From assembly GCA_024704765.1 (NCBI GenBank), contig JAKMXF010000066.1, positions 927,883 to 991,882 on the forward strand: a stretch of 64,000 bases of DNA, read 5' to 3'. The first letter of the stretch is position 1, and each line of letters opens with the position of its first letter. Source of the stretch: Oopsacas minuta (taxonomy: Eukaryota; Animalia; Porifera). Shown in pieces: positions 47,601-53,600 of the stretch. Both the position numbers and the translations under genes were made by a program. The notes beneath the pieces are model-generated. The model was not told where the DNA came from and did not search any database. It saw only the letters and a program-made list of their open reading frames with translations.

Positions 47601-50600
47601 CGATTTCCCATTTTTGATAATTTGCTTGTCTCAATTTTATTATATTTTATACCACTTAAGCTTGTAAACATTATCCATCTTTTATTACATCTAATCAATA
47701 CACAACTTTTTGTCCGGCCTATTAACCAAAAGTAATTAAGAAACCAATATTATAATCCTATTGGTACACTATTTTATCAAATCTAATATTACATATATCG
47801 TATTTGTCATTAATTCTATTATTTGTTATATGTGATTAAGCTTGAATCAATACGAACTATTGCATTTTCCAATTACGTTTTATTACTCAGATATTTAATA
47901 TTATTTATAATGCGGGACGGAGGAAAGCACATAATATGTTAAGATTTGTATAGAGGGCCTACGAGTTGGGAATATAATATTACAATTCGAATTACTTATA
48001 TAGACTCTCATTGATTCGTGAAAAGAGAAGAGACGTTATAGGAAATGTATTCAAATCAATAGATGAACGTATAGACGGCAACCTTAATAGACATAGAATA
48101 ATACAGTTATTCACTTCATTCTACCATCATGCTGATAAGTCTACTCAAAATGCATTAGTTGATCCTAAAACATTTGGAATTTCTGAGTTTGAACAAGATA
48201 TTATTGATGAATCTATTTCCAATATAATACTGACGATTTCAGGTATTTTAATGTTATTTAGTTCATATGTTAAGATTTGAACATTATGCATTATAGATAA
48301 GGAAAATGGTAAGGACGATAATCAGATTATCGAGCAAGTTACTTCTGAGAATAATCTTACAACTGAGCTAGCTAAGACACAGAATGGTATTCTACTACCC
48401 GAAGCACTTAATCAGGATATTACTGATAGCAAACAGGAAACAGATGATATTTCAAAGGGCCAGAATGTAGATACAATACATCCTTCAGGTTAATATTTTA
48501 TTTTTTGAATTTCCTTATTTTCAAATTTACTCTACCCATTTTCCACCACGAATATCTCCGACTTAATATAAAGTCAAAAGATATACAGATCCTTATCAAG
48601 TTCACGGATAGAAATCACAGTAAGATCTTAGATGTATTACTAAATTATTTACCTAATTACACCCTAATGATGTCACTCATACTATAGGAGTTTTAACAGG
48701 ACACATTATTTCTTAATACAAATACTCCTTATAACGTCATCTCACCTAAGGATCACGTGTAATAGGGAACTTTATATGTAATTATATTATCAGAATATTA
48801 TTTGCTCGATATTGTAAACGATACCCTACGTAGATACAGGATTGTACTTTTGGTTTGATACGCCATTTCCTCTATTTATGTAACAACTAATACGTTAATG
48901 ACCCAATTAGCTCTCATTTTCAGAGGATTTGATGTTTTTAATAAATACATGTAATGCATTTCTGTTTAGTTGTATCTACACACGCATTGAGGGAGTAACA
49001 TGGACAGGGTTTCTGAGGGTTTCTGAGTGCCTTAAAGACCTTCTGAGCTTAATTTGCAGCAAAATAATGTATTACGATAATATGATATTTGAATATTTCG
49101 TGCTTATCGAGTGTAAAATCGATTCTTTCTAATATAGCAGTCATATTTTGTAAAAGCTATCATCATTGCTGACTATATTTCGCAGTATACTTGTTATAAG
49201 TATGATGACCATCATTTGACGATCATAAGGTCGGGGCCTATGCTATGCCTTGGTGAGATTTCTCATATTTAAAGCCAGATAACGCATTAATACTAACTAT
49301 TAATATCTATACAGATGTTCAAGGTAAGATTATCGTACGCATTACTAGTGGCTTCAAACACTGAATTATATCCTATTAATTACACGTGTTAATGTGTTAA
49401 TAGACACTACTGATAGATAAATCACACAACATTAATTATATAATAAGCAATGTATGATCTGTAGAATGACAGTAATATTGTCTTTCATAATAGAACAAAG
49501 CCAATTAGAAAATCTAATGATGAAAGTAGGATCAGATCTCATAGAATATCCTATTTAAATAGAGGCGAAATTGGCTCAAATTCAGTTCAAAAGAGACTAA
49601 TATATTCTTATTAACAAGATGGGAAATTGTTGCAGTCGAGCTGAAGATACGATCAAATTAGTCGCTAATGATATTGTTGTGTTGAATAACGCAGAATTCG
49701 AGTCTGGATACGATAAAAAGAGTAAACTCAAAAAGCGTGAGATCCGTAATCTCTTCACAAAGGAACACAACACTGAGAAAGACAGTGGCGTCTCTTCTGT
49801 AGACCCAGCGACAGGAGAATATCTAGAGAGCACACATGAGGAAAATAGTACAAAAAATGAACTGGGTAACAAACCAGTAGAGCAAATGGAGAATGAGGAA
49901 AGTTTAGATAAAGCTACTCCTCTTCCATTCAACGAAGTTAATCAGAATTACGGATTCAGCTCTCCAAGTCCAATTGACCCGAAAAAGACCTTTCGTATAG
50001 GCAAGCGGACAACACCATTAGCATGTCACTTCGGTATTCCAAACATAGGATCTATGTCTAGCTTTGAAAACGAATTCTCGCCCATTGTAACCGATAAAAT
50101 TTGCGTGAATGGTGAAACTTATCCATTCTTGCTATCCGATCTTATAAGTGAGGATAATTGTGATAAGCTAGGGACTGGCGGTTTTGGGGTTGTGACTAAA
50201 CTAACGCATGTACCGAGTAACGTTGTCATGGCGGTTAAACGTGTTCAAATACAGGTTGATATTGGTCTGAAGCGCGAATTAGCCGCGATGGAGGAGGGTA
50301 GAGATAAGGGGTCCCGATTCATCGTTGATTATTACGGGAGTTTAAAGCATAACGGTGAAGTATGGATGGCAATGGAGTTGATGAAAATGTCCATACATGA
50401 GATAAAATTGAAAGTCTACGAAGAGAAGAGAAGCAGCGTACCTGAAGGAATAACCTGGTATGTCTGTTACTGTATTTGTTCTGCTTTAGATTTCCTGAAA
50501 ACTGAATTACACATAATTCATCGTGACGTAAAGCCGTCTAATATGCTAGTTGGAGCGAATGGAAGCGTTAAAATATGCGATTTCGGTATTTCAGGGCCTC

Positions 50601-53600
50601 TAATTGAATCTAAGGCTAAAACCAATGACATAGGTTGTCGTCCTTACATGGCTCCTGAAAGATTCGACCCTAGCATAACTCACTACACGATTCAGTCTGA
50701 TGTTTGGAGCTTCGGAATTTCAATGATGGAAGTAATTACTGGTTCATTTCCCTATTCAAAATGCAGTAGTTATTTCGAGCAATGGAATAGAATTGCTACG
50801 TGCGATCCTCCACAATTGATTGAAGAGAATTGCTCGCAAATTCTCCTTGATTTCATCAATCCGTGTCTCAACAAGGATTCAAAGAAGAGACCTGTGTTCA
50901 AAGATCTTTTAAAATATTCATATTTTGACGGTTTCGAATACGAAACGAACAAAGTTTCCATGGTCGAATGGATGCAATCTCTCGACATATAATATAGAAA
51001 TATGATAGCAATATTGTGTTTTTCATCAGTTGTTTGTTGTTTCAATTGAACTTTAAATCTTACTTCTCCTGTAATACGAGCTAACGATAACAAATTAGAA
51101 ATTTAATCTATCTAATGCAGGTGTTCTGTAATAATAATGATAATGTTATCATGCTAGGCAGCGAGCTAAGCACTACCTTATGATTAGTGCATTATTTGTG
51201 GTAACATTCTGTCTACATCTTACAGAGATATTCCTGATACCATCATATAATGCTGTATTACAGATATGCTAGGTGTAATGTAGGTCATTCATAGCTCGAC
51301 AGAGCACTATGCTCAAAATCTTTCTCTCTTGATCTCATTTTACTAGCATTATATTAAATTGAAACCTCCTTAAATGGGGCTGTGGAAACTGAGCTAAAAT
51401 GAACCTCCACAAACTGGGCAGAAATTGGGTACCATTTTCAGCATCCCTGTAACTTTTGTGGAGGTTACACTGTACTCAAAACTCAAAAATACACAAATAT
51501 TTATAGTACAATAAAAGAGAACTGCAAGTATAAAATTATACAAAAACAGTTGAGAGTCGCAGCACTTGATAACATTTATAGATTCATCTCTTCTAGCCAT
51601 TCTCGTGTAATTCTCTTGCTAGTATCTAGATCGTAATCGTATAAGAAGTTATGTGTTAGTAGAGTGTCGAATGTTGGACGTTTTTTCCAATCTTTAGAAA
51701 GACACGGATTAATGAATGACAACAGACCTTCAGAGTATCTTCCGTTAGGTTGCATTTGTGGCGGTTCTCCCAGGACGATTTCATTATACTGTTCGAAGTA
51801 GCTAGAAAAGGTTGATTCGTATGGAAACACACCAGTCATAAGTTCCATAACAGAAATCCCAAAGCTCCAAACATCGACCTGTACCGTGTAGTTCCTGATG
51901 TTTGGGTCAAGGCGTTCAGGAGCCATATACGGTCTACATCCTTTTTCCTTAGATTTAGCTTTAGACTCTATTAAAGGCCCTGATATCCCAAAATCACAGA
52001 TCTTAACGCTTCCATCTTCTCCCACAAGCATGTTAGAAGGCTTCACATCCCTATGAATAAGCTCCAGCTCCTTTTTCAGGAAATGGAGAGCGGCACATAT
52101 CGAATAGCTAACATGCTTAATGATGTCTTCAGGTATATACTTCTTCTTTTCATCATATACTTTAATTTTTATTTTATCCATTGACCCTTTCATTAATTCC
52201 ATTGCAATCCAAACTTCACCATCATGCTTAATACTACCATAATATTCCACTATGAACGGTGATCCTTTCTTCCTCCCTTCATCCATGGCTGCTAATTCAC
52301 GGTTTAGGCTGACATCTACTCTGATTTGAACTCTCTTAACTGCCATAACACATCCACTTGGGATATGCTTCATTTTGGATACTACACCGAATCCCCCACT
52401 TCCTAAGCAGTTGGATCCGTTAACGTCCTTCAAATCGCCCAGCGCGAAATCATAAGTAGCACCCTTTATCTTTAGGACATCTGAGACTATAGGCGAAAAT
52501 TCGTTTTCATAACTTGGCGTCTCTTTCAACAGAAATTTCTTGAATTCCAATTTTGGAAGTTTGTCATATCCTTTCCTCGGTTTTCCTTTGGGTGGTACAG
52601 AGGATTTTCTTATACCAGGTGACATAGCTGGTGAAATAGTTGACGTCACTACATCAGCTGTATCCTCTCTTAGGGTTGGTAGTGCTACAGGGAGACTGTT
52701 TGGTCTATTACTCTGTATCACGTCATCTCGAGGGAAGTGTTTTCGCATTGTAACATGTTGGTCTGTTTCCTCTGGTATTTGTACGTCACTGTCTGTACAT
52801 GCTGTGAATTCGTCATTATTGTTCTCTTCTGATACTTCTTTTATATCATTGCTTGCTTTATTCTCCTCTATCACTTCATTGACATTATTATCGGTACTGA
52901 TTAGTTGTGAATCTTCTTGGGCCGGAGTTGAAGGTTTAAATGATGGATTACTGAATGCAACAGTTTCAATTTCTGAGTGTTGTGGACTGGGCGTGGCATC
53001 TATTGATGGGTTCTTCTCACCCGTCGCTGGATTTCTCTTTTCTTTCGCTTCACTTCTTTTTTTACTCGTAATACTCACACCGCTGAATTTAAAATGACGC
53101 TTCTTCGGTTTTTTAGGATCATACTCTTTGTCGTATATTATAATATCTCTGTCGAATTGTTCATTGGGTATAAGCCCGGTTGTATCTGATGCAGTACTGC
53201 AGCAGTTTCCCATTTCAAAAATGATTATAACTTGTCGATAGACATGAACTGCTCTATTTATCAATTTATACAGAGCGTGATAGGTAACTTGAGTAGGCAA
53301 GTTCTATTCGATAAACAAAGCAACAACTAGCCAAGAGATGGTTTTGATTATGTTATGGTCACGAATTTTATTAATAAATTTGTAGATGATTAGATTAGCT
53401 ATAATTTATAAACAACCATCTATATAATTTGATAATTAACCCAATACCAGCTTGACATTATAACTAATGAGGAGAAATGAATCTATCATTCTTAGTCTTC
53501 CCAAGAAATAAAGAATTAATACTATCTCCCCCTACGTGATTTGACGGTGCTAATATATTTATTCAATTAAACTTAATATAATTGGTTTACTTATCAAATT

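Follow-up and report, generated by a model that had tools for sequence, protein, structure and literature searches.

A 64,000-nucleotide stretch of the genome of the hexactinellid sponge Oopsacas minuta (assembly GCA_024704765.1, contig JAKMXF010000066.1, positions 927,883 to 991,882 of the forward strand; hereafter the window) carries two convergent genes, A and B, that encode mitogen-activated protein kinase kinases (MAP2Ks) starting with MGNCCS, a consensus for N-myristoylation followed by palmitoylation. On the conservation of this start among hexactinellids and the enzymes encoded in the genome, we consider it probable that both proteins are dual-acylated at Gly2 and Cys4 and hence are membrane-anchored MAP2Ks. 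A first-pass annotation of the window had proposed a convergent MAP2K pair with these starts, and the open reading frames (ORFs), the Pfam Pkinase matches and the MAP2K structures matched in the PDB bear it out. The ORF listing shows A and B as two single-exon ORFs arranged tail-to-tail, each with orthologues in 7 other assemblies. Protein A starts with MGNCCSRA ([12 protein letters not shown]) and protein B with MGNCCSTA. The genes and their predicted lipid signals are:

49619-50992, plus strand: gene A, single-exon coding sequence for a predicted lipid-signal MAP2K of 457 aa.
49619-49636, plus strand: codons for MGNCCS of A, with the predicted Gly2 myristoylation site, the Cys4/Cys5 palmitoylation candidates and Ser6; PROSITE PS00008 fits at Gly2.
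51576-53213, minus strand: gene B, single-exon coding sequence for a predicted lipid-signal MAP2K of 545 aa.
53196-53213, minus strand: codons for MGNCCS of B, from sequence and alignment.

The start is conserved throughout an orthologous set composed of the window and seven further loci (L001, L002, which is identical to Vazella, and L018-L022). The only A- and B-type relatives returned by protein searches came from assemblies of ENA or Logan and from a EukProt transcriptome, that of the hexactinellid Vazella pourtalesii. All 16 genes of the 8 hexactinellid assemblies start with M-G-N-C-x-S, Cys4 being invariant, and all 16 N-termini fit PROSITE PS00008 at Gly2 under the consensus of N-myristoyltransferase (NMT), G-{EDRKHPFYW}-x(2)-[STAGCN]-{P}. 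At position 5, Cys is present in 8/8 B proteins and in half of the A proteins (4/8). The codons of the motif vary synonymously among species (GGA/GGG/GGT, AAC/AAT, TGC/TGT and AGT/AGC), residues 7-12 change, and synonymous divergence (dS) has reached saturation in comparisons of the window species with the rest; the motif is nevertheless invariant, indicating that it is held by selection on the protein. The genome searched, 61,460,524 bases in 365 contigs, encodes one NMT locus (PF01233, 227.8 bits, in a 470-aa open frame) and 16 loci with a DHHC domain. Within it MGNCC is encoded at 13 sites, and only those of A and B head a long ORF; the remaining 11 lie in ORFs of only 5-58 aa, most of them copies of duplicated repeats. 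Near-identical copies of such short ORFs lie at C1:17590 and C1:31945 (inverted) and at C86:18679 and C355:76694, with more at C166:403670 and C354:873745 and at C333:124243 and 124278; these duplicated short ORFs look like repeat families rather than genes. We also ran the search for other MAP2Ks with lipid-type starts that the first-pass annotation had proposed. Among 230 MKK3/4/6-type proteins retrieved across animals, a start with Gly2 plus Cys was found in no family other than A/B. The one other match to the consensus, a sponge protein starting with MGLGGSG (P0027), was considered as a second myristoylatable MKK and rejected: its N-terminus lines up with positions inside the related proteins, and the model is probably truncated.

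The same signal is known from an unrelated kinase family in another kingdom. Plant calcium-dependent protein kinases (CDPKs) with MGNCC(S) N-termini include GrCPK1/8, with MGNCCSRG, and a rice CDPK (Martin and Busconi 2000); gene A encodes the same heptapeptide, MGNCCSR. In PMC4041719, cotton CDPKs starting with MGNCCSRG are positive in Myristoylator and in CSS-Palm, and for the rice CDPK experimental myristoylation and palmitoylation are cited there. Acylated in this way on Gly2 and the adjacent Cys, a Ser/Thr kinase becomes associated with membranes. CDPKs belong to the CDPK/CAMK family, and the likeness is a convergence of short signals without homology to A/B.

Several observations weigh against dual acylation as a permanent membrane anchor, or limit what can be drawn from it. 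In 4/8 A orthologues Ile or Tyr stands in place of Cys5, so that double palmitoylation is no constant of the family. Residues 1-20 have a net negative charge (-1 to -3), which is no help in binding to membranes. A predicted myristoylation motif is also present in a plant CDPK reported from the cytoplasm and nucleus (PMC4041719); the motif alone is therefore no guarantee of membrane residence. The docking sites described below were read at the level of regular expressions only. Among the sequencing-run records for O. minuta no RNA run was found, and in a read comparison over 5,901 letters (48400-54300) the contigs of one run, X5, from a ~96%-identical relative, covered 49457-50787, 50847-51057 and 51466-53290, leaving gaps in all three intergenic stretches. 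Such gene-confined contigs would be given by transcripts or by patchy low-coverage DNA alike, and we did not count them as support. Runs X1-X3, source-sample DNA, covered the whole stretch evenly.

The first two of these observations, together with the CDPKs that are predicted to be myristoylated and are not always membrane-bound, favor the alternative that A and B are myristoylated only, or carry a regulated myristoyl switch, in which case the lipid would act in brief contacts with the membrane, or in binding to other proteins or within the same molecule, in place of a permanent anchor. Cys4, however, is invariant although the saturated synonymous divergence allowed time for its loss, a Cys beside a myristoylated Gly is the classic context of dual acylation, and 16 DHHC loci are at hand in the genome. 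We therefore regard myristoylation alone as unlikely, and dual acylation at Gly2 and Cys4 as the better account.

Conservation by itself does not reveal what is selected, and the MGNC-x-S start could in principle have a role without lipid, as a Gly N-degron, as a redox- or metal-binding Cys or as an element of translational context. Against this, the combination of an invariant Gly2, a small uncharged residue 3, Ser6 and the adjacent Cys is exactly the NMT-plus-palmitoylation consensus, the same heptapeptide is positive in dedicated predictors (PMC4041719), and the synonymous codon variation speaks against an element acting at the level of RNA. A non-lipid role is thus quite improbable.

A lipid on Gly2 requires that the Met of the motif is the start of the protein. 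Were translation to begin instead at an internal Met or on an exon further upstream, Gly2 would never be N-terminal; the sequence before A in the window, ...aacaag|ATG, can be read as a splice acceptor, and B has 30 open codons upstream (the mechanical ORF listing reaches back from its ATG at 53213 to a TTG at 53300, a stretch that contains no other ATG). Across the family, however, an in-frame stop lies 0-30 codons upstream of the Met, with no intervening ATG, in 14/16 genes, mostly at a distance of no more than 12. Stop and start are contiguous in four genes (taaATG), leaving no room for an AG splice acceptor. For gene A of the window an in-frame TAA lies 6 codons upstream of the ATG; in X5 this stop is TAG and the MGNCCS codons of A are unchanged. 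The gene models of L021 B and L022 B have an upstream Met, and their extensions resemble nothing in other species. More generally, upstream translations are unrelated between species, protein conservation begins exactly at Met1, and the ORF of the Vazella pourtalesii Trinity transcript (EukProt), which is called complete, starts at the same Met. Given the abutting or near stops, the unconserved upstream translations and the start of the Vazella ORF, an upstream start is very unlikely, and as far as sequence can tell the Met of MGNCCS is the real start. An upstream start had been named at the outset as what would overturn the reading, and the reading withstood this check.

Downstream of the signal, A and B carry complete kinase domains:

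50162-50926, plus strand: protein kinase domain of A (residues 182-436), with GTGGFG, the MAVK lysine and HRDVKPSN.
50579-50659, plus strand: DFG...APE of the A kinase domain.
50609-50623, plus strand: activation-loop SKAKT of A (residues 331-335).
51642-52412, minus strand: protein kinase domain of B (residues 268-524).
51915-51995, minus strand: DFG...APE of the B kinase domain.
51951-51965, minus strand: activation-loop SKAKS of B (residues 417-421).

Pfam Pkinase matched A and B with E values of 8e-47 and 8e-52, respectively, and the best relatives in the PDB were, in order, MKK4, MKK6, MKK7 and MEK1/2; the first 57 PDB matches were all MKK4, MKK6, MKK7 or MEK1/2, with STE20 kinases coming after them. 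Kinase domains of A and B are 40-47% identical to those of animal stress MAP2Ks (MKK4, MKK3 and MKK6/licorne). Between A and B the kinase regions are 62% identical, whereas the first ~67 residues align weakly (34%). The catalytic signatures, i.e. glycine loop, MAVK Lys, HRD, DFG and APE, are intact, and the catalytic motifs are complete in 16/16 sequences, all of which also keep the activation-loop S-x-A-x-[ST] between DFG and APE. For closer species pairs the ratio of non-synonymous to synonymous rates (omega) in the kinase domain was 0.04-0.07, i.e. the domain is under purifying selection. By these features A and B are genuine MAP2Ks of the STE7 group and are predicted to be catalytically intact. 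The loops differ between the paralogues as the first-pass annotation reported, being S-[KLM]-A-K-T in A and S-[KRI]-A-[KRE]-S in B; its suggestion that SKAKT and SKAKS reflect subfunctionalization fares less well. Ser and Thr are both phospho-acceptors, so that the exchange is conservative and weak evidence for a functional split, and one B orthologue (L018) has Thr.

In two maximum-likelihood trees with animal relatives, all 16 A/B sequences fall into a single clade (100/99), which is sister to a clade of hexactinellid canonical short MKKs (100/98); the joint clade is supported at 100/99. Weak support concerned only the placement of the most divergent B (L018). The canonical short MAP2K of the genome (L006, 340 aa) is 100% identical to LOD99_13014 of O. 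minuta. Both A and B occur in 8/8 assemblies, and the A/B split is therefore older than the divergence of these assemblies. At each of the 8 loci the pair lies tail-to-tail among like neighbors, with pyridoxal-kinase (PfkB) and Mob1 genes upstream of B and, where the locus reaches so far, an NHL/SGL-like gene beyond A. The proposed inverted duplication is supported, and it is old. Relations to the named animal families are less sharp: the joint hexactinellid clade branches outside the eumetazoan MKK3/6 clade and outside the MKK4 clade, and approximately unbiased (AU) tests reject neither its union with MKK3/6 nor that with MKK4 (p 0.077 and 0.090). By score A and B look MKK4-like, the best named matches of A being MKK4, and their canonical sister LOD99_13014 looks MKK6/3-like by its best named matches. 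On these trees A and B are old hexactinellid-specific paralogues of the single short stress-type (MKK3/4/6-like) MAP2K of the lineage. A plausible course would be that the canonical short MKK gene was duplicated, that one copy gained a new disordered N-terminal extension, and that an inverted local duplication of this copy gave A and B.

The MKK7 paralogue (L009) has a long branch and was misplaced in both trees. Two further divergent MAP2K-like genes of the genome, L010 (C221:55443-56306) and L011 (C360:130299-131138), pair on long branches; their PDB scores are ambiguous, L010 scoring about equally with MKK6 and MKK4 and L011 with MEK1 and MKK6. No clear orthologue of MEK1/2 or MEK5 was evident among the MAP2K-like genes found in the O. 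minuta genome. The first-pass annotation had called A and B intronless. Both are single ORFs, as it said, but the canonical MKK, the MKK7 orthologue (L009), L010 and L011 are single uninterrupted frames as well, and the mean for the published genome is 1.59 introns per gene (PMC10280926), so that the lack of introns is unremarkable. A status of A and B as pseudokinases or retro-copies, duplicates that are decaying or non-catalytic and play no part in signaling, is scarcely credible: they are single-exon, lineage-restricted and have a long stem branch (0.69 substitutions per site), but their catalytic motifs are complete, their kinase domains are strongly constrained, both copies and their synteny are kept in 8 assemblies, and the canonical MKK is likewise single-exon.

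The N-terminal extension sets A and B apart from other MAP2Ks. Its features are:

49619-50059, plus strand: N-terminal extension of A (residues 1-147), from alignment.
49718-49756, plus strand: basic cluster of A.
49802-49819, plus strand: invariant DPATGE of A.
49913-49924, plus strand: ATPL of A.
50003-50047, plus strand: [15 protein letters not shown] of A.
52515-53213, minus strand: N-terminal extension of B (residues 1-233), predicted disordered.
53085-53114, minus strand: [10 protein letters not shown] of B.
53016-53033, minus strand: invariant NPATGE of B.
52920-52931, minus strand: STPA of B.
52671-52706, minus strand: [12 protein letters not shown] of B, fitting the JIP1-type D-site pattern.
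52536-52589, minus strand: canonical D-site of B, [18 protein letters not shown].

AlphaFold2 prediction of B from a 31-sequence alignment gave a predicted local distance difference test (pLDDT) value below 50 for residues 1-240; residues 245-545 were confidently folded as a kinase. The extension is constrained, but evolves faster than the kinase domain (omega 0.13-0.22 for closer species pairs; 0.13 for A). No second copy of it was found in the O. minuta genome, and an exhaustive search of 1.84 billion representative proteins found no credible homologue outside the A/B family; the sole outside match, a 993-aa protein aligned in 9 short stretches with 28% identity over an acidic segment, was rejected as compositional. 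The extensions had been described as long and acidic. Long they are (147 and 233 aa), but in the window proteins they combine charges of both signs (net -4, pI 5.4-5.7), and in some species they are basic, so that "acidic" describes them weakly at best.

Islands common to the extensions of A and B are the lipid signal, a basic cluster followed by Φ-x-Φ, [DN]PATGE and [AS]TP. The basic cluster with Φ-x-Φ reads KKR-x-I-x-I or KKR-x-F-K-F and meets the generic D-site pattern in 7/8 A proteins. The [DN]PATGE hexapeptide is invariant in 16/16 proteins amid the fast-evolving extension and matches no docking or degron motif that we could name. In B, R-P-x-S-L-P-V-x-L-P-T-L fits a JIP1-type JNK docking pattern in 8/8 orthologues, using a regular expression that we take to represent this class. 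The class itself is described in PMC5753338. Furthermore, LPKLEFKK of B is homologous to LPKLKFKK, the D-site of the canonical MKK, and this segment is lost in A. The first-pass annotation had contrasted the pair with MKK3/4/6/7, soluble kinases with N-terminal D-domains, and the absence of D-domains that this contrast implied does not hold: the extension has D-site-like motifs and B keeps the canonical site. A and B appear to have gained a predicted membrane signal while keeping D-site-like motifs for docking of MAPKs. A has lost the canonical D-site and only B shows the JIP1-type pattern, and these differences are better candidates for divergence between the paralogues than the activation loop.

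Together these features suggest how the proteins might work. Met1 would be removed and Gly2 N-myristoylated co-translationally by the NMT of the genome, after which a DHHC enzyme would S-palmitoylate Cys4, and Cys5 where present. A catalytically competent MAP2K would thereby be held at the membrane on a flexible tether of ~140-235 residues, and D-site-like motifs on the tether would recruit a p38 or JNK-like MAPK, to be activated at the membrane instead of in the bulk cytoplasm. Candidate substrates are encoded in the genome: a clear p38 orthologue with TGY (L043 on C314, 427 bits to MAPK14) and three JNK-like loci with a TPYVVTR[YH]YRAPE loop (L038 on C308, L039 on C312 and L042 on C144). For two of the three TPY matches the open frame is short (128 and 69 aa), and these are exons or fragments. 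For one TPY locus (L039), a PDB search gave no match at E <= 1e-95, and an atlas search gave JNK clusters as nearest neighbors, which we treat as a lead only. Prediction of a complex between the p38 L043 and residues 150-245 of B gave a score of 0.33 (mark, 0.34), which counts neither for nor against binding.

Animal stress MAP2Ks (MKK4/SEK1, MKK3 and MKK6/licorne) share with A and B the S-x-A-K-[TS] loop and the D-site-type basic-hydrophobic motifs N-terminal of the kinase, whereas A and B, which are restricted to hexactinellids, have a disordered extension of 147-233 aa with the MGNC-x-S consensus, absent from every other MKK3/4/6 protein retrieved. A Met-Gly-(x)-Cys N-terminus is characteristic of the Src homology 4 (SH4)-type proteins, i.e. 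Src-family kinases and G-alpha, and in Src a disordered "unique" region then leads to the catalytic domain. The N-terminal logic of A and B is similar by convergence, but Src-family members are tyrosine kinases and G-alpha proteins are GTPases, whereas A and B are MAP2Ks. To our knowledge no MAP2K belongs to the SH4-type dual-acylated class. MAPK modules recruited to membranes include LAMTOR1/p18-MP1-MEK1 on late endosomes, palmitoylated DLK/MAP3K12, yeast Sho1-Pbs2 and Ste5-Ste7, and LAMTOR1 itself starts with a dual-acylation signal of the MGCC type. In the LAMTOR1- and DLK-type systems the lipid is on an adaptor or a MAP3K, whereas in A and B the predicted signal is in the MAP2K polypeptide itself. 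Literature searches for a MAP2K that is naturally myristoylated or palmitoylated gave none; as they covered the literature incompletely, this negative carries little weight. Neither MAPK nor myristoylation is mentioned in the paper on the O. minuta genome (PMC10280926).

Between and beside the genes lie the following:

50993-51575, strandless: spacer of 583 bp between the stop codons of A and B.
51353 and 51510, plus strand: ATTAAA/AATAAA in the spacer.
51107, minus strand: ATTAAA in the spacer.

A patch of the spacer (51362-51475) had a depth of 330 vs 187 and extra contigs with loose ends, and in the source-sample runs a joint that skips 64 bp (51390/51455) was seen in it; the patch is either an indel allele or a dispersed repeat. 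At an element of ~35 bp (54073-54108), many contigs from each of the four runs also end, with loose sequence on both sides and a depth raised 2-7 fold. This element is a short dispersed repeat just upstream of a pyridoxal-kinase (PfkB) gene fragment (54241-54489, minus strand).

MAP2Ks are textbook soluble relay kinases, and it is normally scaffolds, or lipidated partners like LAMTOR1 and DLK, that set their site of signaling. Should the acylation of A and B fail, an ordinary lineage-specific kinase duplication remains. The two also form a marker gene pair for hexactinellid genomes. A wider reading, which we hold to be possible but doubtful, is that hexactinellids have repeatedly added lipid anchors to enzymes that are soluble in other animals, with A and B as integral parts of a membrane-delimited MAPK module and addressing different MAPKs, the JNK-type docking pattern being present in B and absent from A. 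On that reading the pair would be the first such case among natural MAP2Ks. A MAP2K with a conserved dual-acylation signal of its own would be a natural experiment in which the middle tier of the MAPK cascade is hard-wired to the membrane. The body of a glass sponge is largely one giant syncytium, and in such a syncytial, early-branching animal the spatial confinement of signals is a real problem. On the wider reading A and B, held by their lipids, would keep stress-kinase signals at a patch of membrane and prevent their spread through the shared syncytial cytoplasm.

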